Assembly: GCA_973895155.1 (NCBI GenBank)
Contig: OZ316897.1
Coordinates: forward strand, 4,665,876-4,729,875
Length of the DNA: 64,000 bases
Origin: Marsupella aquatica
Taxonomy: Eukaryota; Plantae; Marchantiophyta
Direction of reading: 5' to 3'
The notes under the pieces were generated by a model. The model was given only the letters and a program-made list of their open reading frames with translations, was not told the DNA's origin and ran no database searches. The position numbers were made by a program, and so were the translations under genes. Below, one piece after another: positions 9,539-57,519 of this stretch (the stretch's first letter is position 1; every line of letters starts with the position of its first letter).

Positions 9539-11904
9539 AGGCTATAATGCCAGGGAATTTCTGATTGTCATCAGTACAATAATCTCTAGTAGTGATGTTG
9601 TGCTTGCTATTGTTCTTCGCATAATTCTTCATCCTCCCAGGCATGTTGCTCACAATCATGCATAACAACACAAAATCATATCTAGGCGCTTTCGTTTAGT
9701 GCAGACGTCAACCAGAGTGTATAGATCTAGACTTAAACATCAGTAGTAATACAATTTTTTAGATGGTGTGATGGTTTCTATAGGTTGCCCAAACATGAAT
9801 GCCAACAGGTTTGCATGTACATTGTTCGCTCAAATTGACAAGTGCCAAATGCTTAGAAACTTTTCCTTAAGATTTAGCAAAGTACCCCAAAAACCTCAGG
9901 TCCTTCTAAGACGGCACAATTTAGAAAAGGAATGGAAGAGCAAGGTTGGATGTGATCATCTAACTCTAGCAAGATCAGTGCCATTTCTGCCCTTATTTCC
10001 AGATGGGTTGACAAAGTCTTTTAGACCTAGAAGATGTCCAAGAAGACATTAAAGCTCAGGTCACACTCTCATTTTAGCAAGATATTCAAGCTTACCTCCT
10101 ACCAATTACCAAATTTGATGCTGCAGCCCAAATTTATTATCCAGAGATTGCAAGGGAGTCCTTGCAACAAAACTACTCAAACCTTAGGGACTCATCAATC
10201 CTATGGCCAAAGGTTTGAGAAGCTTGTTCTGTCTCAGATGTTAGGATTAACAAGCTTTACAAGTAAGAAAATATCTCTCACTTTGGATACTGTGACCCTG
10301 TCCTCCTTTGTTTCTTCCTGTGTTTCCTTTTGCCCTATTTTGATATCTTTCCATGTGCCTTCACGGGCCTGCTAGGTCCTCTTGTCTCCCATTATTCACA
10401 TGGAATTTAAGTGGAAATTTTAAAACCTACAAATAAAATAACTAAGAAGAAAAAATGCCAATCCAGCCTGTTTGGAGGTTACTGATCATTTTAGTAATAA
10501 TCATCATAGTATAAAAGTTACTTATCTCTAGAAGGAAGAGTGGGAAGGAAGAGTGGGTGGCACTTTCTGTTGTCACTCTTGTGACAAGAATACCAGGAAT
10601 AAACCATTTAGGGTTTGAGCAGTGACTTTGCATTTCTGGTTCCCGGTTACAAAGATTGATAATAAGCCAATCATCACTGTAGAAAGTTACAATAGTAAGT
10701 TGTTTGTAACTTCATAAATAAAACTCCAAAGCAATTTTCTTGGGACTCATTTTGAAGCCATCAATGAGCCCAATTTAAATAATGGTGTTATGTTGTCAGC
10801 CTGTTTATCAGTGCCATCTCCACATAAAAGGCTATAATACAGATTGATAACAGTTTGTGCTCAAAACTAGTAGCTAAAGATCCAAACCAGGGGGCGACCA
10901 GGATAGAAAGGGGTACCCAAAGTCACATAAAGTTATTGTTCCAATGACAACGATTGACTAATATATGACTAATAATGGTTGTACCTTTTGCAATAAACAT
11001 CCAAAGCTAATCATATTTGTACCCATTTTGAAGCCATAAATGAGCCCCATTGAACGCCTATCTTGTCATGTAAACATGATGCCCATATAAAATGTTATTG
11101 GTGGAATGAATGTTGCACTAAAATATTTCAGCAAGAGGATCCAAACCCAGATTCAGGACTAGGAGTGAAAGCAGGGGGGATCCAATTAGATGGTGGACCC
11201 CCCACTTGTGTGTGCCATAATACTTGTCCTATTAATCTAGTCCTATTTTTTATTATTTAATTTTAAAAACATTGCATACACTGCAATGTCAGTGTTTACA
11301 TCAAAATGCTCAGAACTTGTTAGCCAGGATTTAGTAGTAATATAAATTTATTTATGATCAGAACTTGTTAGCCAGGATGACATCACAATAGTGATTCTTG
11401 TGCTAATACTGCCAAAATCATTCCCTTCTCCAGCTCCTTGTAAAATGCCGCAAAGGAAAATAAAGTGAACAAATTTTAATACATAATGCCCTAAACCCTA
11501 AATATTTTCCCTTTAGACCTTTGAGGCATTGGTCAATTCAAATAACTATCTCACAAAATACGGGAAAAAATCACTCAATGTCCGGATTAGGGAAACACCC
11601 AATCATTCTTATTTTGAGGATTGGGAGGGTGGGACAACGCTTCAAAAATACCAACTTGGTGCTGAAAGGAGTAGAATAAACATCTATTCCAAAACCTTAC
11701 AATATTGTGACACATGAGTGGCTAACCCTAAACTAATGCTCAACAAAAATGAAAAACTAATGGGTGGTACGGTAAAGCTCAACAATAGCTCAACTAAACG
11801 GAAACTTGCAACCTCAAATCTGTTCCCCCTCCTTGCCCATCCTAGTCTTCAAATGACTTTTTTTCTTTCTTTTGTCCCCAATTTTTTCTTTCAACTTTTA
11901 AATA

Positions 11905-23890: not shown

Positions 23891-25390
23891 TTAACTATCG
23901 TCCGCAACGACTTTAATAGAGATTAAAGCTTCCCTCTCATCTCCTCCTGCTTCCGCCGGCTCGTCATCGAGGGGTTTGTGCACTAGGAATTGATCTTCTG
24001 CACCATCAAACTCGGTTGCCGGTGCCACCTTGGCCGTCGAATGAGGATGGTGAGCCGTCAGGTCCTTAGCGCGCTCTGCCTGCCTCATCCAATCGGTGCG
24101 GAGCAGTACGGTGAGCATCAACGTTACGCAAGTGAGCTGAGCAGCAAGTAGTCCAAACCAAAGTCCCACAAAACCGACGCCAAGCCAGAACCCTAGGGCA
24201 AGGGCTACTGGCATACCCACGAGATAGAAGGAACCCAAGTTAATGTTGGCACCTGTGCTGGGCCTCGCACTACCTCGTAATACCCCACAGCCGGTGGTCT
24301 GGGGGCAGTTGCCCAGCTCGCAGAGCCCCACAATTGGCAAGACCAACGCTGTGAGATGCAGAATTTTCTGGTCTTTGGTGAACATAGCTCCCCAAACGTG
24401 GCGCATGGAGGTGGTGAAGGTGCAGGCAAGAACTGCCACCACACCTGCACAGCTCAGAGCAACGAGCATAGCAGTGCGTGCTCTGCCAGGCCGATTGGCA
24501 CCGAGCTCATTTCCCACTCTTGTGGACACAGCCTGACTCAAAGCTGAAGGGAAGATGTAGACCAGAGCGGTGGTTTGGATAAGAATTCCCATGCTAGCAA
24601 CCGTAGCCTGAGCATCGACTAGCAACCCGGACAAGATAATCATGAATTCATACCACCACCACTCTAAACAAACTGACACGCAGCTCGGAATCGCCAAACG
24701 CAGGAGAGGACCCCATTCTCGGAAAGCCGCCAATGACCAACCGTCCCACGTCTCCTTGTATCGCCCCGAGTACCAGAGATAAGCCAGAAGGAACACCACG
24801 AGATTAAAATCCGTCCACGCAGTTGCGAGGGCTACACCCCGGACATGTAAGCCAAGATAGTCCACCAGCAACAGGTTTATGGGCACGTGAAGTGACAGAG
24901 CTAGAAATGCGCAGTACGTCAGCGGTGTGGTAATATTTTGCGAGCGAAGATAGATCCGCAGCGGATTCAGAATAGCTTGTGCCGCAAGGTCCGGTAAGGA
25001 GAACATGAGAAAAGTGTGTGCAACGGCAAGAATTCCTACATCTTGGCCGCAAAGTGCAAGGATTCTCTGCATGTTTACCCACAAAATGGCAATTGGAAGA
25101 CATGCGCAGAACAGCATCATTATGGTGCGCTGGAGTGTGAGGCCTATGAGTTGCCATCGCTTCGCTCCATAAGCCTGTCCACAGATGGGCTCCATGCCCA
25201 TAGCCAAACCTGCCAATACTGAGTAGCCTGTGATGTTCGCGAATCCAATAGACAACGAACCCCCCGCCAGTTCGAGGTCGCCCAGTCGGCCGAGGAAAAG
25301 CATTGATATCATAGCCCGCAGGTACAAGAGTACTCCCAGTATTACCATAGGCCCGGCGATGCTGCCCAATTGCCGCAGCTCATGCACAAT
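23891..25390 (-). CDS. MATE (DTX) family transporter, DTX48/DTX49/DTX51 (ABS3/ABS4) clade; second coding exon (499 codons + stop)
   Basis: ORF 23891..25450 has hallmark plant MATE motifs: RAMISMLFLG, ELAGGSLSIGFANITGYSV, GMEPICGQAYGA, CVSVCLEWWWYEFMI, STRVGNELGA, ELGNCPQTTGCGVLRG, NLGSFYLVGMPVA. Its first 20 residues are intronic: pyrimidine tract plus CAG acceptor (ttcttgttcgtgctgcag|att) at 25391/25390. Confidence 0.96.
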   Translation of the reverse strand: MVHELRQLGSIAGPMVILGVLLYLRAMISMLFLGRLGDLELAGGSLSIGFANITGYSVLAGLAMGMEPICGQAYGAKRWQLIGLTLQRTIMMLFCACLPIAILWVNMQRILALCGQDVGILAVAHTFLMFSLPDLAAQAILNPLRIYLRSQNITTPLTYCAFLALSLHVPINLLLVDYLGLHVRGVALATAWTDFNLVVFLLAYLWYSGRYKETWDGWSLAAFREWGPLLRLAIPSCVSVCLEWWWYEFMIILSGLLVDAQATVASMGILIQTTALVYIFPSALSQAVSTRVGNELGANRPGRARTAMLVALSCAGVVAVLACTFTTSMRHVWGAMFTKDQKILHLTALVLPIVGLCELGNCPQTTGCGVLRGSARPSTGANINLGSFYLVGMPVALALGFWLGVGFVGLWFGLLAAQLTCVTLMLTVLLRTDWMRQAERAKDLTAHHPHSTAKVAPATEFDGAEDQFLVHKPLDDEPAEAGGDEREALISIKVVADDS

Positions 25391-26212
25391 CTGCAGCACG
25401 AACAAGAAGAAGCATTTTACAATCTTAGTCAAGTTACAAAACGGAAGCAATCACCACATAGTTGGCGTGGCCGTAATGACCATTCGCTTCACCACAAGCG
25501 CGTGTCTGCCGCGAAATTGAGACACCATCACTCCTTAGATCCATCAAACTCAAAATTCATCATGACATGCAGCAGCCTCTAAGTCCCACGAGGCTTGGCA
25601 GACTTATCTGTAAGGCATATTCTATACAGGTCATTAAGAAGGTAACAGGTGCTGGCTGGCGCTCTGCTAGCGCTGAATGAACGGGTCAAACAAAATGTCA
25701 CAATGTTGAAGCATCCTACGGAATCAATGAGGTGTACCAGGAAACAAAGACCTCGGTGTACACTCACATGGAACGACAGCTACATCTCTGCTTCTCTCGA
25801 ATTGAGAAAAGAAAGCCAATTATTTTCCACTTTACCCGCAGCCGGGAAAGATACCTTCAGTTGGTCGGTTTGGCAAGAGCCTCGTTGAAAAGTGTGGGCT
25901 CACGGATTGCCCATTCATTGACACGACAACAAAACTACCCGGCTATGGGCGTTGTTGAGACGTCCAACTGGAAGAGGGCTTTGGAGCAAGGATTGCAAGA
26001 ACATAAGTTCCCTTGGTCAAAATTACCGAGGTCAGGCATCTACGCAGGATAAATGGTCGAGTTATTAGTTTGGAGAGATTTACACTGACCAAGATTTGGA
26101 ATCGTACTAGCAACACCGAGAAGGAATTCTACACAAAGTAAAATTGTCGCGTCTAGGGTTTCTCTACGACTGAATTATAGCACCGTCAATTGCGCATTTG
26201 AAAAAAATTTAC

Positions 26213-42924: not shown

Positions 42925-45900
42925 TGTATATGGTCATTAGGTACGTATCCGTATAGCTAGGAACCCCGCTAGGAACAGTATGCATATGAATTTTAGTAAT
43001 TATGATTAGGTTAGGGATAGGTTAGTCAACATAATGAGTGCCGAATGCAATGCACACTATTATGACCATTTGCTATACTATGACGACGGCGGAGTGACAG
43101 TTCATCCTGGTAATTCACACTTGGACCGAGGCAGCCGTGCTCAATTGGGAGAATGGCGGTTGCAGGTACTCAACGATCTCACGTCCAAACTCCTCCAGGA
43201 GCCCCCCTAAGAACCCCTTTTGGTGGCTTGGCAGCTCATTTACCTCGCTCTTTGCCATCATGTCGCATGCTCCATGTTCGTTTGCACTTATTACGCTCAG
43301 GTTTTGCTCAGGATCAAACTTGGTTTGTCAAGGAAAATTGAAGGATAGTGCACATGGTAGTGGAATTTAGTTGGGCGTAGTATAAGGAGACGATCAGGAG
43401 ATAGCGGACCTGCCCTGCAGAGGAGCAAATGTGGCGAGAGAGACAAGCTCTATCAACGGACAAAGTAGATTAATATGACCCTTACCGCTCTCGGATTCTG
43501 GACCCTATTTGGGGAGGTAGCAGCAAAGCTATGGGAGACTTACTGGTATTCTTGAAGGCTGCATATGAGCAAAGGTACACTAAATTGATGATTAAGGTAG
43601 CGCAAATCAATTGCAAGAAGGTCGTTATCACCAAGGATTCAGGATACAACAAGACCCAAGCTTACATTACTGAGCTATTCATCAACAACGAGGGCTTTTG
43701 GTTTGTAACTGAGGCAATTTTGGTGGTATCAACGGAGTATTTCAAGTTGCCCAAGTGGCAAAAGCTTACTCAGGCGGAGTATGACAAGATCCCAAGCTAC
43801 ATTAAGCAACAGCTTGCGGTCAAGCGGAGGGAGGAGGAGATCAACTATCAGCGTGAGGCAGCACAAAACCTCACCTTCCTCTAAGAAAGCTCTAACATGT
43901 TTAACTAGGATATGGCTACTCTGCCAGGACCTATCCCCGCCAGCCCGCCTACCACTGGCCCGCCCAAGAGGATCCCTCCTAGTCAGGCACAGGTACGCGC
44001 TGTGGACAATGCAGATTGTTCTTTGGGATTGGCCAGTGAGGGTAGTCCGCACCTGACACAGCGGGTGCAAAAGAGGACTAGAACGATGCAGGGACCTAAA
44101 CCACCTGCCCAAACTACTCTTGCCCCGTACCAGTTTTTGCCCCGGCCAACCCCCCGGCCAATCCCCCATCCAGGAAGAGACCCGCCCCCTCAAAGCAACC
44201 CTTGCTACCAAAAATCTGCATACCCAAGGCGTTGTGGCAGACAATCAAGTCCCCAGCCCACGTGGACTATCTCAAGGAGCATCAATTGGACAAATTTGCT
44301 GAATTACCCTAGCAGCCTACCACCTTCGGAGCAAGGGAAATGCAAGAGTTCATTGACCCCTATTGTGGTGCCCGCACTGCCTCCAACTTGACCACCCCCG
44401 TTTCTACCACCCCTTACGGATCCCATTCCCTCTCCCTTGCCAACTACCAAGGAAGCAGTATGCCCCACCCATGGAGGAGCCTTACATTATGGCTCAGACC
44501 GTGGATGAGTATCAAGTGGTACCTCCCACCTTAGCCCACAAGTTGGTGCAAAAGTTTAGTTAGGACCTCTTGGTGGAGCTGGTAGAGTTCATAGCCCGTC
44601 AAGTCACGGACCACTTCCAATCGGCCTTCTTCACTTTGGAGCACCATCAGCTGGCTTATGGCCCTCGCACAAGACAAACTCATGGCCAAGGGGAATGAGA
44701 TTGGGGCCCTCCAAATGACCGTGGAGCGCCTGGAGTTAGCAACAGCAACCATCCAAGGGGATTTGGTCCGTGTCTCAGACCAATGGGAAGGACTAAACCA
44801 AGAACTACTTAAGGTTCAAGACAACCTTAAAGAACAGAAGGTTGTCATGCTTGGATTGAGGAGGAGTCCGTGGCTTGGGTTATGAGCCTAACCAACCTGA
44901 ACAACCAGTTTGTGCAGGCTGCTCGGCTGCTGAACATTGTCACCTTGGATCAAGATAAGTGGTTGGCGCAACATCAGGCCAACCTTAAAACGATTGGCAA
45001 ACTCAACCAGGAGGTGGTGCGTCTACAAGAAGGGGTGGATGAGATCTCCAACAAGGCAGAGGAGGCAATCCGGGACAACCAAGCCCTGCAGTCTTGGGTT
45101 ACTCTGCTGATGAGCTAGTGAGGCGTGGCAAGAAATGCCTCTAACCAAGGTGGCTCGAGGTGCCAGCCCGACAAGATGACAAACAGCATAGCACAAGCAA
45201 GGGGTGGTTAGAGGAAGGGGCAGTCGGTCAGCTGCAAGATAGAGCAAGAGGGCAATTGGCATCTTTTGGCTAACTTCAGCTGCAGGACAGCTGCCATTAG
45301 ACGTTGATTAGCAGCGCAGCAGATAGGGTTAGGAGGGAACTTAGGACCACCAAGCGTAGGATAGGATGCCAATCAACATGTTATAAGCGATTGGTAGTAT
45401 GTTCTAGGGATTAGGGTTGCAGTCAACTACGCCAGCATGCTGACAGTCAACTAAGCTAACTTGCTGATGGTCAACCGCGCCAGTTTTGAAGGCCACAACT
45501 AGTTAGGTACTTAGGCAGGGATTACGCAGGGGAGGTAGTGTCTCCTCCGACCCTTTGGCAAGTAGTATTTAAGGACCCCCCTTCCCGCATGGAGTGGGGC
45601 TTTTTGGTTTATTTCAGTAAGCAAGATTGCTATTGCATGGGGAGTATTGGCCTGAGTAGGACTAGAGTGCACTAAAGAGTCAAGCTTGTCAGGCAAGTGC
45701 AAGACAAGGTCTCGTAGAGAGTGGGCATCAACTGCCATTAGGCGTGCTAGTCGCTTGGCTAGCCGCTTAAAAGTCAAGTCAACTATGTACATGTCACTGT
45801 GTTTTTTGAGTAAACATAGTCTTTGCCTCCCGCTTTGCCTCTGATCTTTGTGAGTAAATTGTGTATTGAGCATACCTTACCTTTAACAAAGGTGTCATTT

Positions 45901-48238
45901 CAAAAGATGCACCGGGTGCGAACTAATGGTTGGGATTGTAAGGAAGATAATGTTGAGTACGTTGCAAGTTCTTATTGTTGGCAATGGCTTGGAAGTCCCC
46001 AAGCCAAGAGTTAGTATGAGTCACTAACTATGGGTGTATTCTAGCCGTGGATTCCAAACATACATATATACGATAATAGTCCAATTTAGGGTGGTACGAG
46101 TAAAAACCCACTACTACACCCCTCCTTGCCCGAAACCTCACCCTTACTGGTGGTTTTGCGCACTTAAAGAGTGTAACCAAGCTCACCCAAATACATAGCT
46201 TCCAAGTCCAGCCTTGCTTGCATGTAGCTCTTTAAGTTCTATTGCTTTAGTTAGTCTATGTGAGATCACTCAATTGGAGTCCCCCCGCTTCTACCGGGGC
46301 TGGCTCTATATACTCACACATTGAGACCAAATGGTTGGATGCTATGCTGCTAGAGCCCCATCCCTGCCCTAATAGTGTTGCCATTATCTCTAACTACTCA
46401 AGCCTAACTCAACTTTATTTCTATCTCCAAGATTGTCCATGTACTTTGAATTTGGCCCTTCTTCACAATTTTTGTGAGCTTGCACCTCTTCTCTCAATTT
46501 CTCTATTCAACCAAGTGGTGGACCTTGCCACCCAGCGCCCTCACCAATCCCAGCACTCACGCCTAAGTGCCCCTGGTGCCCAAACGCCTCAACGGAATAC
46601 CTCGAGCAAGTAAACTAGTGCCCCTTGCACCGCCAGCGGCCCCTCCCATACGAAGCTGCACTTGCTCTCTAACACGACCGCTACTCAATGGTCCTCCCTA
46701 TCTGCACAAGCAACCAAACACCTCAGTAAGTAACCCTGCAGGATCTAGAACTCACCCAGTCTAGCATCCTACTCAAGCTCAACACACATTGGTAAATAGG
46801 TTAGCGATAGGTCCTCCCAATGCCATAAGCCGGAACCAGAACCCACGCCCACTGTTCGTCCAGAACAACTCCTTAATTGGGCCCGGCCCGGGTTCCCCCT
46901 TGTACCTATCCATCACCAACTGACCGCCCTGACCCCAGGACATGCTCATGGCCCAAATAGCGTAGCTTGTCCTAAAGCTTGTCCCAAGCTTGTCCTAACG
47001 CGCCGGGACCAGAATGCCCCCGACCCTAGAATCCATTCCCGGTTCACCTCACTGATGATCTAGGAGCCAAACACTCTTGGGACTCAACCTCCACACCTAC
47101 TTGGCCTTGACTCCCCAACGCAAGCTCCCTTGGGAGACTGAACGCGGCTTGGCTGCTGTTTGACAGGATTTGGCAAGTGGACGAGTTAACACCCGCACAC
47201 CCCAAGACCCCAAGGTACCCCCAGACCCATCTGAGCTCAGGAGGGCGTAGCCCTCTTCAAGAGCTTTCCAACGCACCCAAGAAGTACTCCAACGGACTTC
47301 CCGTTGGGAAGATATCGCCATTTCCGTTTGGTGATTTCCCTTAGTGTCGCGACCGCCACGGCTCACGACTTTGGCTCGCCCTTGGTCCCCAGGGAGAGAC
47401 CACTCCCTTCATATATGTTTTTGGAGACCTGCCACCCTCGGACCAGCTTTGGTCCCTAAACATTTGGCCCCCAACCCGGATCTTATCGCGCATAATGGGC
47501 GCTCCCTCAACTGGCAACGCCTGTAACTTTCTCGTTAGGCATCCGCAAGCGGAGTACCTTAGCCCGTTGCGATCCGGCCGACCCAGTGCTCATGCCTAGG
47601 CCCTCAGGTCTCATCGCCGCTCGGGGCCCCCAATCGGCCCAACCCGGATCGGGCCCTAACTTGCGCCCCAAGTGTCCGTCGCCCATGGTGTCAACTCCAT
47701 TGGCCTAGGGCCCAAGAGGAGCTCACACTCAAGCCCTCAGAACTCCAAGTCCATCCGGAGGTCCGGACAACCATCCTTGAGCCCGACCCATTTACCCTTG
47801 ACCCGACCAGCTATTAGCTAGTCCAAGTTCTTAGTGTGTGTCCCCAGCTCGGCTCCTTGCCTCGCTAGTGCCACGTCTCATTGCCCACAAGTCTCCCCAT
47901 GCTAAGTCCTCCCCGGATGGCCTATCCGGGCTCAGACCATAAGGGAGCTCGGCGTCGGAGTCAGCGACACCGGAGCTAAGTGTTAAGGTAGTCGAGTTCT
48001 ATGACTAACCATCTGCTGCATGGATGGAGGAATTGGAAGCTACTTGGGCTCTCCTTCCAATGAGCTCAATTATAGCCAATTTGGTCAAAGATGGAGAAAA
48101 TTATGCCCCCGTAACCAAGAAGGGGTACAAATTGCAGAGCTAACCCGTGGCCTCAAGCTAATCCACTAGCCGCTAATATGCTAACCCGCCAACTCAAGCT
48201 AAGTTGAGCCCAAATCCAAGCTGACCTATGCTCAAATG
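42925..48238. mobile_element. Decayed Ty3/gypsy-like retroelement block; no RT or integrase recognised
   Basis: GC-richer block containing a broken long plus-strand ORF and a TG...CA segment (about 45539-46118) bordered by purine tracts. Boundaries are approximate. Confidence 0.5.
43480..45300 (+). pseudogene. Broken ~600-codon ORF: globular N-terminus, Pro-rich linker, coiled coil; resembles the extra ORFs of Tat/Athila-type gypsy elements
   Basis: ORFs 43531..43884 and 43912..44391 are in the same frame, separated by only 2 stops. ORFs 44658..44885 and 44870..45118 are heptad-rich. Confidence 0.6.
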
Positions 48239-48661: not shown

Positions 48662-50446
48662 CACTAGAACGTTGAGTGTAGTGTTGAGTCTCCTTCCAAC
48701 AAGAAATAAACTTTGAATGCTGAGATGTGGGGTGTGAAAACAAAGCCAAAACTGAAAGTTGGTGAAGATTAAAACTGATCACTCACTTGTGTAGCCCACA
48801 AGATTAATTATCCACCAAAGTTTTTAAATGGTTTGTCAAACAGACCCGCAAGTGCGGAGAATGTTTACGTACTTTAATGGTACGGCCAAAAATTAAAAAT
48901 ACCCCATGAGGGAATCTTTTATACTAAAGATTCTGCTGGCATACATTTTCAAAATTAAAATCACCAATATATGCCGAATTTCCCCAAGTATACCTCTCTA
49001 AAAGTTGAAGTTTATCCAATTTTGCCTTGGATCTTTGATGTTTGGTCAAAATTTAAGCCTTCTTTTTGGGAAATTTTGCTCACCTTTGTACATTCCATGT
49101 GGGGGAAGTTCATAGAGGCATTTCCCCTACTTGAGCCATGTCAACCCCTCAAACATCTCCCTTGATTTTTTGATCTCCTCCGACGCCTACGTAAGTGACG
49201 ACTATTCATGGCAAAAAGTACCCCAGAGCATATTCACACAAATTCTTGACTTAATTTGTACCAAAATCTGAATTTTATTGTAGATTCAAAAACTAGACTT
49301 TGAGGGCACCAAGATGGACATAAAAAACTCTAAAAATTATGAAATAACGAGGGAAAAACAATTAAGCAAAAATTACTTATATTAATTTATCCGCCATTGC
49401 CAAATTTTTGAGTTCAAAACAAGAATTCAAAATGAGATTGTTTTGCAACTGCTTGACTGAATTCAACTATTTTGATATCGAAATGTTTAGAAAGACAAGG
49501 TGCTCAAGCCTATCTAAATTCCAAGTCCAAAATAGCAATTCAAAAGACTGAGATAAGATATCAAACTTATCTCTTTCCCAGTAACTCAATCTGAAACCAT
49601 CACTTGTGATTTGTTCAATTTCTAATCTCATGCCACCATTGCTTCACTAAATGAGCCCCTGCAGGTTGTGTTCTCCACACTTGTGAGAAGATTGAGTGCA
49701 ATCTTCTCCCAAGAGCTCCGTCCCAAAGAGAAAACATCTAATGTTTGCTCCACTTGAAGCAAGTTCTATGGAGTTTTTAAGGAGATAAAAAACCTGAGCT
49801 CTGATACCAATTGTGGGGATAAATCTAATCAGGCAAACACTCAAATTGTACACTTACTCATTGTTACGTGGTTCACCTCAAGGTTGGCTATGTTCACGAG
49901 AATGACAAAGCTTTATTAGCGATTTTGTGTCTACTTAGAAACTCACATTAACAAATCTCTTCCTCTTGAAGCTCTTATCTCTTGCTATGTGCTTTGTGTT
50001 CTCTCTTGAGCACTCTAGTTGTATGTTCTCACACCTTGAAAAGAGTTATGAGTCAAGCCTGCACCCAACTTGCACAAGCACAACCAATTAGTCCCCAAAT
50101 ATTGAATACAACACCACCATATCTACTATCCAACCTATTTATGTTCAGTTGATTAGAGTTATAACCTTTAAATAATGAAGAAAGCTACATTTCATAACAC
50201 AACAAAATAACACAACAACTAAACTAGCATAATTTTGAGAATTTGGTTTTACTAGCATATATTAACAAATAAAATCTTCAAAACTAAGCTGCCCAAGACA
50301 ATATCATAGATATTTACAACTAGTGGCTCAATCCAAGCCATCATTTTTTTACATAGCCTCTTATTATTGTAAATGAGCTTTTGATGTCATTCATACAAAA
50401 TTAAATTTATGCACATAAATTAAAAATTACAGAATGATTTACAACA
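48239..50446 (-). mobile_element. Truncated Ty1/copia LTR retrotransposon (5' LTR about 49812-50446, PBS, leader, start of gag)
   Basis: PBS tggtatcagagc (tRNAiMet) at 49798-49809 on the minus strand, 2 nt from the LTR end ..ccccaca. The LTR carries the ttacgtggttc...ggctatgttcacg motif common in copia LTRs. The distal LTR end is approximate. Confidence 0.85.
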
Positions 50447-50562
50447 CTCGTTTAATACATTTTGGCAATATGATCTAGCCTGTATGCAACACTCCTTTGA
50501 ATGCACTTTGACAATATGATCTAGCCCATACTCAACACTCGATTGAATGCACTTTGGCAATC
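50442..50562. repeat. ~45-bp tandem repeat, about 3 copies
   Basis: caacactc..ttgaatgcactttggcaatatgatctagcc repeated. Confidence 0.8.
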
Positions 50563-51682
50563 TGCTGTACCCCAAAGGATTGAGCTGGACCCACATACTA
50601 GTTTCATTTCTTAGGTACTACATAGAAATGGGGAGAACAGGCATGGGATCAGAGTCAAACAAACAAGACTCCTTCCATGACAAGTGAAGAGTGGTGACTC
50701 TTCACTCTACCATGGAAGGAACAAAACACTTTTTAAAGTTCTCACCCCTTGATACTCTAGGGAATGTTGTCTTTGTTGACCCTGAAAAAAAAACAATTTA
50801 AGGCCCTACCTGATGTTTCTGTTTGTACTTTGGAGAACATTTCTCCTAAGCATGTTCTACACATAACATATTTCAGTGGAGAATGTCCTGGCTCGATTTG
50901 ATGTGACCTCCCAACTAAAGGGTAGGTATGATTGTTCATTATATTCATATTCTTGTTTTTCCTTGTGCCTTTTCATTCCCAATAAGTGGGCAAACCATTG
51001 TCCTCAGTCAAGTCTCTCAACTCTGTTAAAATACATGTGTACCATATATTTAATTACATTTAATCCTTACCATTAAGATTGTTTCTTTTTCATGGACCAC
51101 ATTAATATTTGAATTGGTGGTCATTGTTTGCCATTTTTTCCATCTTTATAATTATTTATATGATATCAAAAAGTTAGATATATTTATTATTTTATCACAT
51201 TAAGATAAAAATACATATCCTTTTATTTTGCTGCACGGCAAGATAAGTAATCAGTTTCAAGAGGATGAGCTAACTGTACAGCTATGTCGGGACACACCAG
51301 AAGGATTATCCCAAAGAAAAGAAACTTGGAAGAAAAGTCATCAGGTGTTTATTCAGGAAAATGCCATCCTTAAAGGGCTTTATTTTACAAATTTAATTTA
51401 ACCTTTTGGTTGCATTTTTGCATTCCGCTTGTTGAGCAAAGACGCTACTCGCCAAAGCATGTGACCATCCAGCAACTTAGTAGACAATAACAAGACATAT
51501 GCCGGACTATGGTCTTTCCATACTCCCCGCATGCCTTAGAATATGAATGAGTATTGAGATGGGTGGTCTCATTAGTGAGCTTCTCATTCACAGTACCACC
51601 TCTCCTGTTGATCTCCCTCTTGAAACGCAAGACCCTATATGGTTTAACAGACTTCTCCACTATAACAGCAGTGTGCTCTTGA

Positions 51683-52063
51683 CTCATATTACATGAACCA
51701 TGTGTTGATGTAATTAGATTCATGAAAGTAGACAGTCAACCTATTTCAGTACACACATAGCATATATGAGGCCCTTTTAGTGATTTTTCCAGGTATAGCC
51801 TGATCGAATTCACATAGAAATACCTGTCTCTAAGGTCACAGTGGTAGGGACTGAGAATGATTTCATTCAATTGCCTAATTTCTAGTCACATCTGTAATTG
51901 AACAAATGTATGGGTCAGGCACTACTTAAGATGAACTTCGTTTGGAGCAAAAACTACACATAATTTCACCTATATGTATTTTCATACTCCAATGCATGTC
52001 TGCTATTTTATTCCAGACTACATTGCCTGCTTGGAATTCTTAGCCTTTTACAGTTATGGTCTC
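51683..52063 (-). pseudogene. BAH-like domain remnant downstream of the PHD module, same strand
   Basis: One frame with no frameshift but with stops: ETITVKG*EFQAGNVVWNK...IHIGEI...ITDV...P*RQVFLCEFDQAIPGKITKR...TWFM*YE. Motif order and spacing fit the BAH consensus (Y/F.xGD.V; YIG.I; E.FLS...D.....I..K; FF..Y). Confidence 0.55.
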
Positions 52064-52471
52064 TTACCATACACATTATTTACTGGAAGTGAAAAACACA
52101 AACATCCTTGTGCAGGCCTTAAGTTCAAGATTGCGATTGACTTAATCAGTCTTCAGAAAAGAAGTTAACTTGGTTTTTTAGGTGTCAAAGTGTAGGAAGG
52201 TATAAGGACACAACCATGGCTGAACTGAAGAAGCAACATCAAAAATCACTGAGTGGTGACAAACTCTACAGACAATTTCAAATTAGCAGGGTGATTCTAA
52301 TCTATGGTTCACAGCAAGCTATGGTTCACAGCAAGAGCCGCCCCACTTCCTTAAGAAGTCCAAAATGTGAGATGTGTGCAATGTTGGATTCATTTAGCTT
52401 ACTTAGCCTATAGGTGCTGAGGAGCTTGTTCTGTTGCTGGAGCTGGAGGTGTCATCTAGCAATAGCAAAGT

Positions 52472-53033
52472 CAAGTGATCTGTGACAGGGGTCTACAGAT
52501 GAGGGTCAATTGTATGGAGGTGACAATACAAAACCATCTATCAACCCCGTGTGCACATTGACAATAATCTGGTGGTCACATGATACCCTTGTGCCTAAAG
52601 GGCTAGTAAGCACCCATGGTGCCAACTGGTGGGACATCTGAGACAATGGACCATATCTATCCAGTAGTCACCGTCAGGCTCCCCACAAACAGGACAAATA
52701 TGCAGTGGGCAAAGAGAGTTTTCACGGGGCAGGCATGTGAAACAGAAAAAACAAACACAGAAATCAATCGGTCTAGACATTTCCAAAGCTCTTGCTCACC
52801 CCCCCCCCCCCAACAGTGTCGGTTGTGCCACATTGAGCACACTTGTTGATATTAGTGGCACAATCAAAGCAGGTCCAAGCACCCCGATGGTCCTCTTGGA
52901 GCCCAACCCATGGGCATGCATTCTTTGGTGCATAAGTGGACTGGGAATTCACATGGAATTGCCTTACACAGGTGCCATCACACATGACCAGGGCACATCC
53001 ATCATCACAAATGGCACAGACATGAGTGGCCAT
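52472..53033 (-). pseudogene. EDM2-type composite PHD-finger module, disrupted by two frameshifts and stop codons
   Basis: Joined frames read VCAICDDGCALVMCDGTCVRQFH...CPWVGL...CFDCATNINKCAQC / ELWKC / FCVCFFCFTC...CPLHICPVC...VHCLRCPTSWHHGCL...MVLYCHLHTIDPHL*TPVTDHL. This matches my recollection of Arabidopsis EDM2 (CAICDNGG..CEGSCLRSFH, CPLHKCSVC, CRRCPKSYHRKCL, VLIYCQEHEIDEELLTPVRDH). Confidence 0.82.
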
Positions 53034-54239
53034 CTGATGAATATGTGCACTTGACCAGTGACAATGCCTTCTCATGACCTGTGATCCACCTCTGCATGCT
53101 GGCAGTTTTGGACGAACCATGACTTCTCATGAAGAACAAAAAACAGCACAATATGGTTGGAGTCATTGATGCAATGAAGCCACGAACGAGAAGTCACAAC
53201 CATGCATTCATGCCTAAGATTTTCCAAAGTGTCAATTCAAACATCCAAACACAACCTGTATGTCACCAAGTACCTACTAGTGGGTGCAGCTCACTTATGT
53301 TTTAGAAAGAGACAGTTTATATGTCAAAACACTCTACAAATAAGAACATGAATGTAGAGGTGCATTTGTGTGCATGGAGTAAATTTTCAGTTTAGGACTC
53401 TTGAGATTGAACACTGTCAATTACTGACAGATTTTGTACATTGAAGGTGGGCAATTGTTGGGCCAACATTTACACAGATTACTTAAAAACATAGCCAAAA
53501 TTGAAGGTGGGCAATTGTTGGGCTAGCACTTTCACACGCTACCGACAAATTTTCACAGATAATTGAAAGGAAATCGCTACTCAGGGAGCCCAATAGAACT
53601 CAACGTATTAAAGAAAAGAAAAGAAAGGCAACATTGGCACCACAAAGACCCTACCAACAAGCCACCAAGAAGAAGCAACATGTCCATTGAACTTTGCAGC
53701 AAGACACTGTTTTCATGATTATCCATCTGTAGTGATGATAATAGCAAAGCACACACCCTAGATGGCCGGTGAGATGACAAGAAACAAGAACGTTGATTTC
53801 TTTGTAGATCTTGTGATCACCGAAAGAGATGGAGACAACCGGCACCGCAGCTCATCTTTGCGGAGGAGAGGCGAGGACGACCACAGCTGAAGTCAGCTTT
53901 GCTCAACTCAACAGAGTAGGAACCCGCTCCTCCCGCTAATTAAGCTGCACACGAGTAGAAATGGCCAGAGTCATTCACTCGGTCAAGCTAGGAACAAGAA
54001 GTCCCTACCATAAATTAGCCACATGACTACAAAAAAGTAAACCTACTAGCACGCCCCCCCCCCCCCCAACCTTGGACCTTGTGGTCTTAATATACTATAG
54101 AATACCACTTTGAATGTCAACACACAACAAAAAGATAAACAACATGAATGTATGTACAGGTAGCAAACACATGTGTGGAAGAAATTTCACTGACTGATGA
54201 AGCGGAGTTTGGAGGGGAGATTACTGAAATCTCATTTAA

Positions 54240-55560
54240 AACCTCAAAACAAAACCTGTACCGGCCTCACTGAGTAATTGGTATTGGTGGTCCTGGAGAC
54301 TGTTCAAAAACAAGGCAACTTTATATGTCAACACAATGAAAACATAATTACAGGTATGAAACAACGGCATCAAATATATTTGAACTTTACGGCTTAAGCA
54401 CAGATTGTGGGCTCCAGAGAGAATGGCATAGGTGGAAGATGACAAGAAACTCTCTACACCTGAAGACAGTATAGGAAGATCAGCCACGCTAAAAAAGGTG
54501 GACGTTGATTTCCACTCAAAAAAAAGTCACCATGAAGGTGGACGTTTGGCCGAGGGGGCATGAAGGCACCCAATGTTCTGTTTGTGATGAAAAGATGGTC
54601 ATGGGGGTGGGGAAAGACAAGTAGGAAGAGGGGTGGGGAGGAATGGTCAGTTACCTTTAGGCCATTTTGATAGAATGGGGACCCTAGCTTGTACTTAAGA
54701 AATGATGTTCTATACAAATGGTGGTAACTATAAGTTCTAACCCAATGAAGAAGTGTATTGACCAACACCATGGGCCAGGTCCTTGGGTTTGATTGGAGTT
54801 GCAATGAAGATATTCCACTCTTGCGGAATGCAACTCTCTATAAATGACATTTGTGCGCAAACTACTGAAATGAGTGATTCAAAAGAGTAACGGGGTGGTC
54901 AACTTTGATCATCCGTGGCTTTTACTAGTGGTACTAATGAATCGGTAGTCAGAACTCATCATACTTAGGTGACCTTGTCATAATAGTCAAAAGTAGTGTG
55001 GTAAAAAATAGGGGGGAATTCTACTAGTGCTTGCAAGCCTATAGTTGAGTGTCCAGAAAAGGTTAAGAATTTATTCTAAGGCTGGATGTTGGATTGTTGC
55101 AATTTCTCAAGACTATTTGTCATTACAATGAGGAGGGGTTAGAAGTTAGTACATAGGTAGGGGTAAGATACTCTTGGAGGTCGGGATTTCACACTAAGAT
55201 TATGTCAAGGATCATGTGCAGGGTTTAATGATATTTGAGGATTTCAAAACATTTGAAGGACTTATTGCACACCATCCCCCTGCCATGGAAACCTTTTGCC
55301 TTAGAGCCTTTGTTGATAGCTGTGTAATGGGTCTGATAGTGCCAAGAGATCTCCCGTGGAACTCCTGCTATGGATCTGGGAATGCTGAGCTATCAATTGC
55401 AAGTCCTCAACGCATAGAAAACCAAGTCTCTCAAGGCCACCTTCCCTTAGGGTGAACTGAACCTTGGAAGCTAACCAACCCCCTTTACTTCCACTTAGTT
55501 GCCAACCTAAGGCTTTCCTATGAGTCATGGGCTCACTAGTCCATGTAGCAACTTGCAAGG
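54240..55560 (-). pseudogene. Decayed multi-exon ORF with weak ParB/Srx-like motifs
   Basis: Segments IRPITQLSTKALRQKVSMAGGW (55272-55337), EEWNIFIATPIKPKDL...PILSKWPK ending at a donor aag|gtaact (about 54655), and YAILSGAHN (54404-54430). Confidence 0.3.
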
Positions 55561-56593
55561 ATTGTCAACGTGATCACAACTCTTGATAGTCAGGTGAGGG
55601 TAGTTCCCTCATATATATCGCCAAGTTGTAGTGCGAGGAAATGTTTTGAGGGAGAATTTTTTTAAATTATTTTTTTCACTATGGGTGTCCGTACAGTATG
55701 GACACAAAAACATCTCAATTGGGCAGCTGAGATTCAGAATTTTTTTAGATAACTGATGTCAGCCGCTAATATCAGTTATCAACTGATGATGTTGTGTACC
55801 CCACAAAAAAGTTAAAAATGATCAGAATAATGCGCCATGCCATATTTTTCAATGCCGTGAAGCAATGAATGCAAGCACAAAAAAGCTAAAAATGATCAAA
55901 GAAATATGATATTGCAGTTCTTCCAAGATATATGCTTGATGGGACCCCGACAAAAGAAATTTAGGTGATATAAGCTCTTATGAAAATTTTGTTACAAACT
56001 AGGCCCCCTCTAACACTTATGTGTCAGATGTTCTTGTAAAGTTCCTATAAGGAGTTTTAGCTTGATACCATCACCAATAAGATTGAACTATTGTAAAGTT
56101 TAAAGTCAAACCATGCTTAATGATAACTAAACCGTTGGGGGAACCGCGGAGTAATGGCAGCCGTCGCGCAAATTGTGAGTTTTTAAATGAAGACAATATG
56201 GTTCATGTCTTCAGGTTTGAAGTTTGTCTTAAGGTTGTTTCACGGAACCTATGCACAGGGTTTGCATGATGTTTCAATGTTTCTCTTTGTTCGTTTGCCT
56301 AAGTATGGAATGAATCCTCTACTTTTGGCCATTGGTCCCTATCGCAACGTTTTAAAATTATCTTCTCACATCTATCTAGACCCCAAATTTGCCTAAGTAT
56401 GGAAGGAACCAAGGATCTTTTACTCTTGGCTGTTTTCTCTTGTTGCAACTTTCAAAAATTGTCTAAGTGTGAAACAAAGACACCATGGACTCAATCACAA
56501 CGAGAAAAGTTTGCTAGCCTGCAAGAGCTAGACTAAATGTAGGCTAAATAGTGTAAAACCCACTATCCTGTAGCTAGTAGTGGATCCCTTATC

Positions 56594-56694
56594 ACTCTAT
56601 AATCATGTGAAGACATAATCCCATTATGTGTGCAAGCATAGACATACTCTATAATCATGTGAAGACATAATCCATTATGTCTTAAGCATAGACA
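56594..56694. repeat. ~52-bp tandem duplication
   Basis: actctataatcatgtgaagacataatcc(c)attatgt...aagcatagaca occurs twice. Confidence 0.85.
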
Positions 56695-57519
56695 GTCTTG
56701 CGGTGGACTGTGTCATAGCGTGCAATGGATTGCCCTGGGAAATGTACGGTTTACAATGCATTTAGGCACCACATAAGAACCATGAGTATGGAACCTATGT
56801 AGGGGGCCTAGTTGGTAACAAAAATTTTGTGGGGGGCCTACAGTAGTTTGTAACAAAAGTTTAGTAGGAGCTGTCACGTAAATCTGTTTTGGCAAGGGTC
56901 CCATCAAGCATATACCTCCAGCTCTTCCATCTCAAACACGGTATGTGTGCCTTTTTGAACTCAAGATCATGTACTTTAAAACCTAAATGTACTCTTCAAA
57001 ACTTGAACAGGAGCCAGGGCAGAGCACCACTCACCACATATTTGAATATATACATGGTCCAGGGTTGTGTTCCGGGAAGGCAGTAGTTGAATCATACTCT
57101 AGTCTCCACCATACCCCAATTCTTTATTGTTTTCTCCTTGGATAGAATACGGGCACAAGAACAACAGTAGAGAATATATTTGATGTTTTTGAGATTTTCA
57201 AAAGTTCATATATATAGAAAGCAATACTATGCAAAGTGGGCATAGCAACCCAAGCAACCAAGCTATGTTCAGATTGGCTGCTTGGTTTGTCTTGTCTCAC
57301 ACCCAATGAAAACCATAACTATCACGGCATAGACATGTTGTGTGGCAGAGCAAAAAAGAGATGTATACAGTGAGGCTTCTCCGTATATAAAAAGTGTAGT
57401 ATACATGATACAAAATGTACGTACTGTAGAGCGGTTGCAGAGAGGTGAATCATGTTTCTCTTGTGTCCACAACTTGTTCGTTGGATGTTTCACATGTACA
57501 AGTTTATGAGCAGTTCCCT

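Follow-up and report, generated by a model that had tools for sequence, protein, structure and literature searches.

The locus lies in a 64-kb window of the Marsupella aquatica genome (the whole stretch of 64,000 nucleotides that was analysed, to which all positions refer). It contains two decayed coding stretches on the minus strand, one with PHD fingers and one with a BRCT domain, together with a number of smaller features:

52403–53120, minus strand: small stand-alone EDM2/NSD-type triple-PHD pseudogene of about 235 codons (Pfam, tblastn, Cys/His alignment, tree)
52799–52811, minus strand: 13-G run (13 C if read on the plus strand), site of the first frameshift, from frame 0 into frame 2 (frame reading)
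near 52771–52768, minus strand: second frameshift, frame 2 to frame 1 (frame reading)
52493–52597, minus strand: four in-frame stops in the third PHD finger and tail (TAG at 52597–52595, two at 52543–52538, one at 52495–52493)
51670–52402, minus strand: spacer and expected site of the N-terminal half of the BRCT gene (first BRCT, linker), with no recognisable coding signal
51493–51669, minus strand: BRCT domain core, remnant of a separate twin-BRCT gene (tblastn to a relative's protein)
53440–53549, no strand assigned: pair of direct repeats, each about 50 nt long and spaced 60 nt apart, on the upstream side of the PHD gene (family D1)
53780–53950, no strand assigned: CpG-richer patch with 9 CpG (observed/expected 0.81 versus 0.45 in the window)

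The PHD relic is complete but disrupted: two frameshifts and four stops interrupt its reading frame. The first-pass annotation had reported an EDM2-type PHD region with its diagnostic tail on the minus strand, and Pfam, tblastn and the tail itself (...VLYCHLHTIDPHL*TPVTDHL at 52537–52472) bear this out. The extent proposed for it (52472–53033) falls within the region, but its boundaries had to be moved: by homology the gene starts at an ATG at 53120, and it ends with a TAA stop at 52405–52403. The N-terminus MVRPK matches MARPE, MARTK and MTRTK of relatives, and an alignment with them shows that none of the 21 conserved Cys/His columns has been lost. For alignment and tree the relic was read through with an X at each break. 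Three NSD-like PHD profiles were tested (PF23011, PF22908, PF23004). PHD-1st_NSD matched over 53120–52776 below its cutoff of 27 (E 3.1e-4, 21.3 bits) and PHDvar_NSD over 52795–52598 above the same cutoff (E 2.4e-6, 27.9 bits); the middle finger is split by the frameshifts and unscorable as one piece. The intact relative P0001 (245 aa) matches all three models weakly. In tblastn its residues 19–229 align to 53126–52487 with an E of 2.5e-35, the relic and P0001 being collinear over the full length.

The 13-G run is spanned without any difference by exact contigs of the public runs X1 and X2. Other copies part from the window at about 52805, and by our own reading the consensus of their loose ends is ...ELRKCPD..., like that of intact relatives. 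At position 52597 the contigs of other copies have a G where the window has an A, giving CAG (Gln) on the coding strand and not TAG.

Downstream of the PHD region the first-pass annotation had placed a candidate intron (52402–52266) and a BAH-like frame (52063–51683), and had read the whole as one decayed gene in which an EDM2-type PHD module is spliced to a BAH domain, possibly fusing the reader functions of EDM2 and ASI1/IBM2. Splice-site dinucleotides are indeed present (GT at 52402, AG at 52267–52266), and coding-like sequence does exist downstream of the PHD gene. However, the TAA at 52405–52403 lies directly before this GT and the intron therefore joins nothing. Over its 127 codons the BAH-like frame contains 8 stops, a number that chance alone would give (9.4 ± 2.9 in shuffles of the same bases). 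Of 16 stop-free pieces from 51226–53120 none matched BAH (PF01426) in Pfam even at E up to 10, and a Pfam scan of 16 relatives turned up no BAH. Intact relatives all end 2–12 residues past the TPxxDHI tail; the relic protein ends directly past it, as do P0001, P0039 and P0014. Finally, the downstream coding remnant is BRCT and belongs to a separate gene. There is no BAH domain and no PHD-BAH fusion at this locus; a spliced PHD-BAH gene is extremely improbable, and the single-protein architecture of an EDM2-type PHD plus BAH reader is removed as false. Likeness to the ASI1/IBM2-AIPP1-EDM2 complex, which combines a BAH-RRM protein with EDM2, is limited to the EDM2-type PHD module. Neither BAH nor RRM was found here, and the partner gene encodes BRCT, which differs in fold and function.

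The frame of the BRCT remnant (51885–51448) contains 1 stop in 146 codons compared with about 10 expected. Within it, 51669–51493 is matched by residues 173–231 of a 271-aa protein encoded on L011, a 13-kb public contig (tblastn, 36% identity, E 6.7e-9; E 2.1e-11 against a sub-region of the window). This protein passes the Pfam BRCT model at residues 172–248 (E 6.7e-9, 36.3 bits versus a cutoff of 21.3) as well as BRCT_2, and the window match corresponds to its second BRCT domain. The window ORF itself gave weak Pfam matches to BRCT and PTCB-BRCT (E 0.019 each, 15.6 bits, below cutoff), and a BRCT cluster was its top ESM Atlas match (score 0.90). Compared with solved structures the ORF (92 aa) gave no match, and its single-sequence AlphaFold model (mean pLDDT 58.7) was too poor for a fold search. 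Through homology to the Pfam-validated L011 domain the match is significant, and 51669–51493 is assigned on this sequence evidence to a BRCT domain. Eight pieces of 51670–52402 gave no Pfam match, and residues 1–172 of the L011 BRCT protein had no tblastn match there. A 1014-nt contig of another copy (record 3 of run X1) is collinear with the window from 52893 to 51873, which places 51670–52402, with the proposed intron and BAH-like frame in it, inside the repeat.

In four public runs from two studies the contig depth over 51379–53151 was 10- to 400-fold above the flanks, these figures being sums over contigs and not copy numbers. Summed depth in run X1 was 124–264 versus 17–21 in the flanks, and in run X3 it reached 37,416 versus 24–190. 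The contigs matching the window repeat were mostly 85–99% alike. Since the raised depth covers both the PHD and the BRCT parts, both belong to a high-copy repeat. Over the relic the CpG observed/expected ratio is 0.1–0.3 versus 0.45 for the whole window, a sign of decay.

The PHD module shares with EDM2 and EDM2-like proteins the three-finger arrangement, the NSD-like Pfam models, the aligned 21 Cys/His columns and the C-terminal tail ...YC..H.ID..L.TP..DH... Such a clearly EDM2/NSD-type module in a window that lacks a transposase might be expected of an ordinary pseudogene of host EDM2, a segmental or processed copy with no transposon tie. However, in the tree a branch with 100/100 support separates 17 small proteins, the window copy included, from 8 long EDM2-like proteins, of which P0032 combines DNMT1-RFD with PHD_NSD. 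The small family (e.g. P0001, P0014, P0039) has the PHD module alone in 220–245 aa, lacks the RFD-like N-terminus, the C-terminal domains and the PHD2 insert of about 20 residues seen in the long proteins, and relatives in it adjoin a transposase rather than a host-gene context. The start codon and the end of the relic match this family. Features of EDM2 proper, i.e. an RFD-like N-terminus and C-terminal domains, are absent from the window copy, which has its own ATG, stops after the tail and is flanked by domain-free sequence without RFD or other EDM2 parts. A Pfam search of the flanks (49470–51003 and 53580–54837) likewise gave no F-box, zinc-finger or transposase remnant. A single-copy ordinary EDM2 pseudogene, against which the first-pass annotation had set its proposal of a mobile cassette, is thus not what the tree and the high copy number indicate, and we consider a host EDM2 pseudogene of any kind highly improbable. 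Public members of the small family are distant (35–55% protein identity to the window copy), and a homologous-protein search with P0001 as query returned just three further small relatives. With the 92-aa BRCT ORF or the 115-aa PHD ORF of the window as query it returned no protein, an outcome which, in view of the length and word limits of this search, does not bear on whether relatives exist.

The gene context of these relatives points to a transposon. On L011 a PHD gene, the BRCT gene, Transposase_21 (3.9e-41), DUF4218 (2.7e-32), DUF4216 and Transposase_24 follow each other on one strand, the BRCT gene sitting between the PHD gene and the CACTA transposase. On L002 (5.7 kb) a PHD gene is followed by Transpos_assoc (2.1e-5). 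Together with the four domains on L011, Transpos_assoc forms the usual plant CACTA domain set, and two PHD relatives, those on L002 and L011, lie directly upstream of CACTA-type transposase genes. A search of the L011 contig for CACTA ends or inverted repeats found no element ends. On L001 a BRCT-like ORF comes after the PHD gene; it has no significant similarity to the window BRCT ORF. This L001 ORF gave only non-significant matches to solved structures, including a 53BP1 BRCT at E of about 0.4, and its single-sequence AlphaFold model (mean pLDDT 30.7) was too poor for a fold search. When stop-free segments of nine related loci were compared with the window by tblastn, the PHD stretch alone matched; it is all that the relatives' contigs share with the window, except that L011 adds one BRCT stretch. 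The first-pass proposal that the PHD reader is borne by a transposon and has intact relatives in other places agrees with these results, namely the intact proteins P0001, P0014 and P0039, the transposases on L002 and L011 and the high-copy PHD and BRCT parts.

In L001, L011 and the window alike, the PHD and BRCT parts are neighbours with the same orientation, separated by 0.35–0.7 kb, and the contig of another copy is collinear across both. They could accordingly be exons of one gene that encodes a single PHD-BRCT fusion protein in intact relatives. However, in the protein relatives as well as in L011 and L001 a stop closes the PHD frame right past the conserved tail, and the BRCT frame of L011 has its own ATG; a single fusion protein is therefore very unlikely. 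Among the listed runs that contain this stretch, none is recorded as RNA. Many small intact relatives are found on short contigs without a transposase, which would also fit a host-domesticated, stand-alone PHD family that is multi-copy and not mobile, the window copy being a dead member. These contigs are only 0.5–2 kb long, too short to show neighbours, whereas both contigs of sufficient length (L002, L011) have a CACTA transposase beside the PHD gene. Taken with the very high repeat depth, this makes domestication very unlikely.

In the window itself no transposase homology was found anywhere in the 64 kb, which indicates a dead fragment and not an element. Candidate CACTAC ends exist, e.g. 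at 53734, but none has a matching partner or a matching 3-bp flank, and the search for CACTA terminal repeats with 3-bp target duplications gave no convincing pair. Membership of the CACTA class is consequently based on the relatives and the repeat depth and not on the structure of the window copy.

Very probably the locus is an inactive piece, about 1.7 kb long, of a high-copy CACTA (En/Spm)-type DNA transposon family; it would come from the accessory-gene region and carries separate PHD and BRCT relics. The first is what remains of a small EDM2/NSD-type triple-PHD gene on the minus strand; the second, co-oriented and some 500–700 nt downstream, is from a twin-BRCT gene, of which it represents the second BRCT domain. 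Intact relatives have the order PHD gene, BRCT gene, transposase; in the window the transposase and the element ends are missing or unrecognisable, and no working protein is likely to be expressed from this copy. In intact elements the PHD protein would, by analogy with the PHD module of EDM2, read histone H3 tails, and the BRCT pair would bind phosphorylated partners, so that the two together might form the transposon's own interface with chromatin or repair. A two-protein chromatin module owned by the transposon, with an EDM2-derived H3-tail reader and a twin-BRCT adaptor ahead of the CACTA transposase, is a possibility we put forward tentatively, and we think it somewhat doubtful. If it is true, the module could counter host silencing, choose integration sites or link excision breaks to repair, and the window would hold one dead copy of it.

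As a broken fragment the locus is by itself of little weight. In L011, an independent public case, a CACTA transposase stands in a row with a PHD gene of this family and a BRCT gene that has been validated, and this supports the idea that these transposons carry their own chromatin-reader cassette. The window shows that such cassettes also persist in detached form, as relics that might be taken for novel host genes.

Classical En/Spm is known to encode just TnpA and TnpD. In the relatives both the PHD and the BRCT genes share the strand of the CACTA-domain genes and immediately precede them, as cargo additional to the classical gene set. The window copy has neither transposase nor recognisable ends. 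In the literature searched we found no published description of CACTA elements whose standing cargo comprises a BRCT gene and a PHD reader. Transposon-encoded proteins that interact with the host are known in VANC of VANDAL21 and the ULP protease of KI-MULEs. The likeness to these is one of concept, that of a DNA transposon retaining, besides its transposase, a gene with a possible effect on host chromatin; they have no sequence relation to the PHD/BRCT pair, whose role is putative.

Upstream of the PHD gene two further features were noted. The CpG-richer patch at 53780–53950, taken in the first-pass annotation for a possible 5' end, does exist, but it is separated from the ATG downstream of it by 660 nt, has single-copy depth, and no connection with the gene was found. 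The direct repeats of family D1 are a separate observation: they recur elsewhere in the genome, and in their case depth was raised in the bin 53349–53545 only.

Reading 51000–54200 in three frames revealed a PHD-type cysteine pattern on the minus strand. The relic starts in frame 0 with an ATG at 53120 (MVRPK...), passes into frame 2 after a run of 13 G (52811–52799), stays there for about ten codons (EQELWKCLD) and shifts a second time near 52771–52768 into frame 1, which it follows to the TAA at 52405–52403. Frame 1 is interrupted by four internal stops, located at 52597–52595, 52543–52538 (two) and 52495–52493. The EDM2-like tail reported in the first-pass annotation (VLYCHLHTIDPHL*TPVTDHL) is present in this frame reading. 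The PHD half of that annotation was thus borne out for gene and tail but not for extent: the ATG lies 87 nt farther upstream and the end just past the tail.

In Pfam the first PHD piece matched PHD-1st_NSD (E 3.1e-4) and the second PHDvar_NSD (E 2.4e-6, exceeding the curated cutoff). Using the 115-aa first piece as HMMER query against 1.84 billion representative proteins, 36 proteins were matched: the top matches are small (131–245 aa, 51–53% identity), and the lower-scoring ones include long proteins of 800–1600 aa. Residues 19–229 of the 245-aa relative P0001 cover 53126–52487 (tblastn, E 2.5e-35), and tblastn of the relatives found by HMMER gave no second matching place in the 64-kb window. 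When the window copy was aligned with an X placed at every break, it retained all 21 Cys/His columns that are invariant among the relatives. The small proteins end 2–12 residues past a TPxxDHI motif in this alignment and are without the insert of about 20 residues in the second finger (PHD2) that only the long EDM2-like proteins have. Among the latter, P0032 combines DNMT1-RFD with PHD_NSD; in the remaining long proteins the same PHD module is joined to other domains. In a maximum-likelihood tree of 26 sequences, the window copy included, it groups among 17 small proteins, which are split from 8 long proteins and the small P0017 with a branch support of 100/100. Judged by its sequence, the relic is a member of a stand-alone PHD protein family, as its C-terminal end, insert state and tree placement all indicate. 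A pseudogene of the host EDM2 is ruled out by the tree split, the small-family C-terminal end and the missing PHD2 insert.

It had been suggested that the PHD frame continues through an intron (about 52402–52266) into a BAH-like domain at 51683–52063, forming a single-chain fusion. The candidate donor GT at 52402 directly abuts the upstream TAA, therefore splicing there cannot lengthen the PHD frame. The proposed BAH frame (52063–51683) contains 8 stops in 127 codons, the other two frames 9 and 12; since shuffling the bases yields 9.4 ± 2.9, stops occur at chance level. All stop-free pieces of at least 20 residues from 51226–52480 were queried separately against Pfam at E up to 10, and none matched BAH. 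Likewise, a BAH domain was found in none of the 16 relatives scanned. With a stop before the donor, no BAH and a BRCT remnant downstream, the PHD-BAH fusion is rejected. The CpG patch at 53780–53950, regarded as a possible 5’ end, is real (observed/expected 0.81) but belongs to the single-copy flank and has no tie to the gene.

Downstream of the PHD relic, frame 51885–51448 carries one stop in 146 codons. Its open part (92–96 aa) weakly matched Pfam BRCT and PTCB-BRCT (E 0.019 each), and its first neighbour in the ESM Atlas was a BRCT cluster (score 0.90). The public contig L011 (13 kb) encodes the PHD relative P0034, followed on the same strand by a 271-aa BRCT protein and transposase-type genes. 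Residues 167–254 of the 271-aa protein pass Pfam BRCT (E 6.7e-9) and BRCT_2 (E 1.1e-6). Residues 173–231 match the window at 51669–51493 with 36% identity (tblastn of the protein: E 6.7e-9 for the whole window, 2.1e-11 for the sub-region). By this match, the window ORF is what remains of a twin-BRCT gene, namely its second BRCT domain. The N-terminal half of that gene would sit at about 51670–52200, where BAH was proposed; a search with the L011 BRCT protein did not detect it there.

The transposase-type genes of L011 comprise Transposase_21 (3.9e-41), DUF4218 (2.7e-32), DUF4216 and Transposase_24, a domain set known from plant CACTA (En/Spm) elements. On a second contig, L002, an ORF whose product has a Transposase-associated domain (E 2.1e-5) lies about 420 nt beyond the PHD gene. 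On L001 the ORF after the PHD gene has BRCT as its nearest ESM clusters and a weak BRCT_2 in Pfam. The transposon-borne origin suggested in the first-pass annotation is supported, as L011 and L002 put PHD relatives beside transposase-type genes and depth is high. No F-box remnant was found by Pfam in the flanks of the relic, nor on L011. Between its transposase genes and the Transposase_24 ORF, L011 has 27-nt units (ACCTGCAGTTTCAGTGAAGCCAT...) arrayed in tandem at 10237–10501, with a run of N breaking the array.

Transposase homology is absent from the entire 64-kb window, the flanks of the relic contain no domains recognisable by Pfam, and no CACTA end pairs with matching 3-bp flanks were found in the window. 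It therefore holds a detached fragment, which is assigned to a CACTA element through its relatives and its repeat depth. As a member of a PHD/BRCT cassette family, this locus is ordinary and dead: with both genes broken and no transposase, this copy does nothing.

Contigs of four public runs (X1–X4) from two studies were placed on 50000–55900, and depth was summed over contigs at least 85% alike, a value that is not a copy number.

Summed contig depth over the relic (minus strand) and its flanks
50788–51378 and 53152–54924, flanks, without the short repeated bins 51182–51378 and 53349–53545: X1 17–21; X3 24–239
51379–53151, PHD and BRCT: X1 124–264; X3 up to 37,416 (PHD) and 18,151 (BRCT)

The summed depth shows many near copies of 51379–53151. 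A 1014-nt contig that stems from another copy runs collinear with window positions 52893–51873, thus the PHD-BRCT spacer also lies inside the repeat. The TAG at 52597 is CAG in other copies. By our reading of a 30-letter loose-end consensus these carry ...ELRKCPD... in place of the G run at about 52805, as do intact relatives. The window’s own G run and lesions are borne out by exact contigs. CpG observed/expected is 0.1–0.3 over the relic vs 0.45 for the whole window, which fits long-term methylation and deamination. In an X3/X4 contig about 93% alike, 52639 is joined to 54593, skipping 1953 nt; it may represent a paralogue whose upstream junction differs, which could help define how the fragment formed.

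From the domain families, an intact PHD protein would most likely bind histone H3 tails, as reported for the PHD module of EDM2, and an intact BRCT pair would most likely bind phosphorylated proteins. Together they would link the element to chromatin state or break repair. A literature search of incomplete coverage for CACTA together with PHD, BRCT or EDM2 brought up no description of such a cassette, a result that does not prove novelty.

On the plus strand, 13 consecutive C occur at 52799–52811 and, 1256 nt away, at 54055–54067 (repeat family D9); AAC and 16 loosely similar nt follow each run. Contigs of X1–X3 also show a form without 54052–54132, removing the second run; a homopolymer-prone insertion and a small mobile piece are both possible origins. 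Contig depth rises 10-fold or more above the surroundings at 50000–50590, 54925–55121 and 55516–55712, and nested inverted repeats (I3, I4, I6) occupy 55926–56917; these look like small non-autonomous transposons near the relic. The block 44000–48000 (GC 0.51–0.54, strong negative GC skew) has many open stretches of 100–170 aa on both strands with no Pfam match and could be an unrecognised repeat or decayed retroelement. At 23891–25450, inside a GC-richer block (20–30 kb), the minus strand carries a 519-aa ORF, intact and in a single exon, that strongly matches MatE (MATE efflux transporter, E 1e-63); this is probably a genuine host gene.
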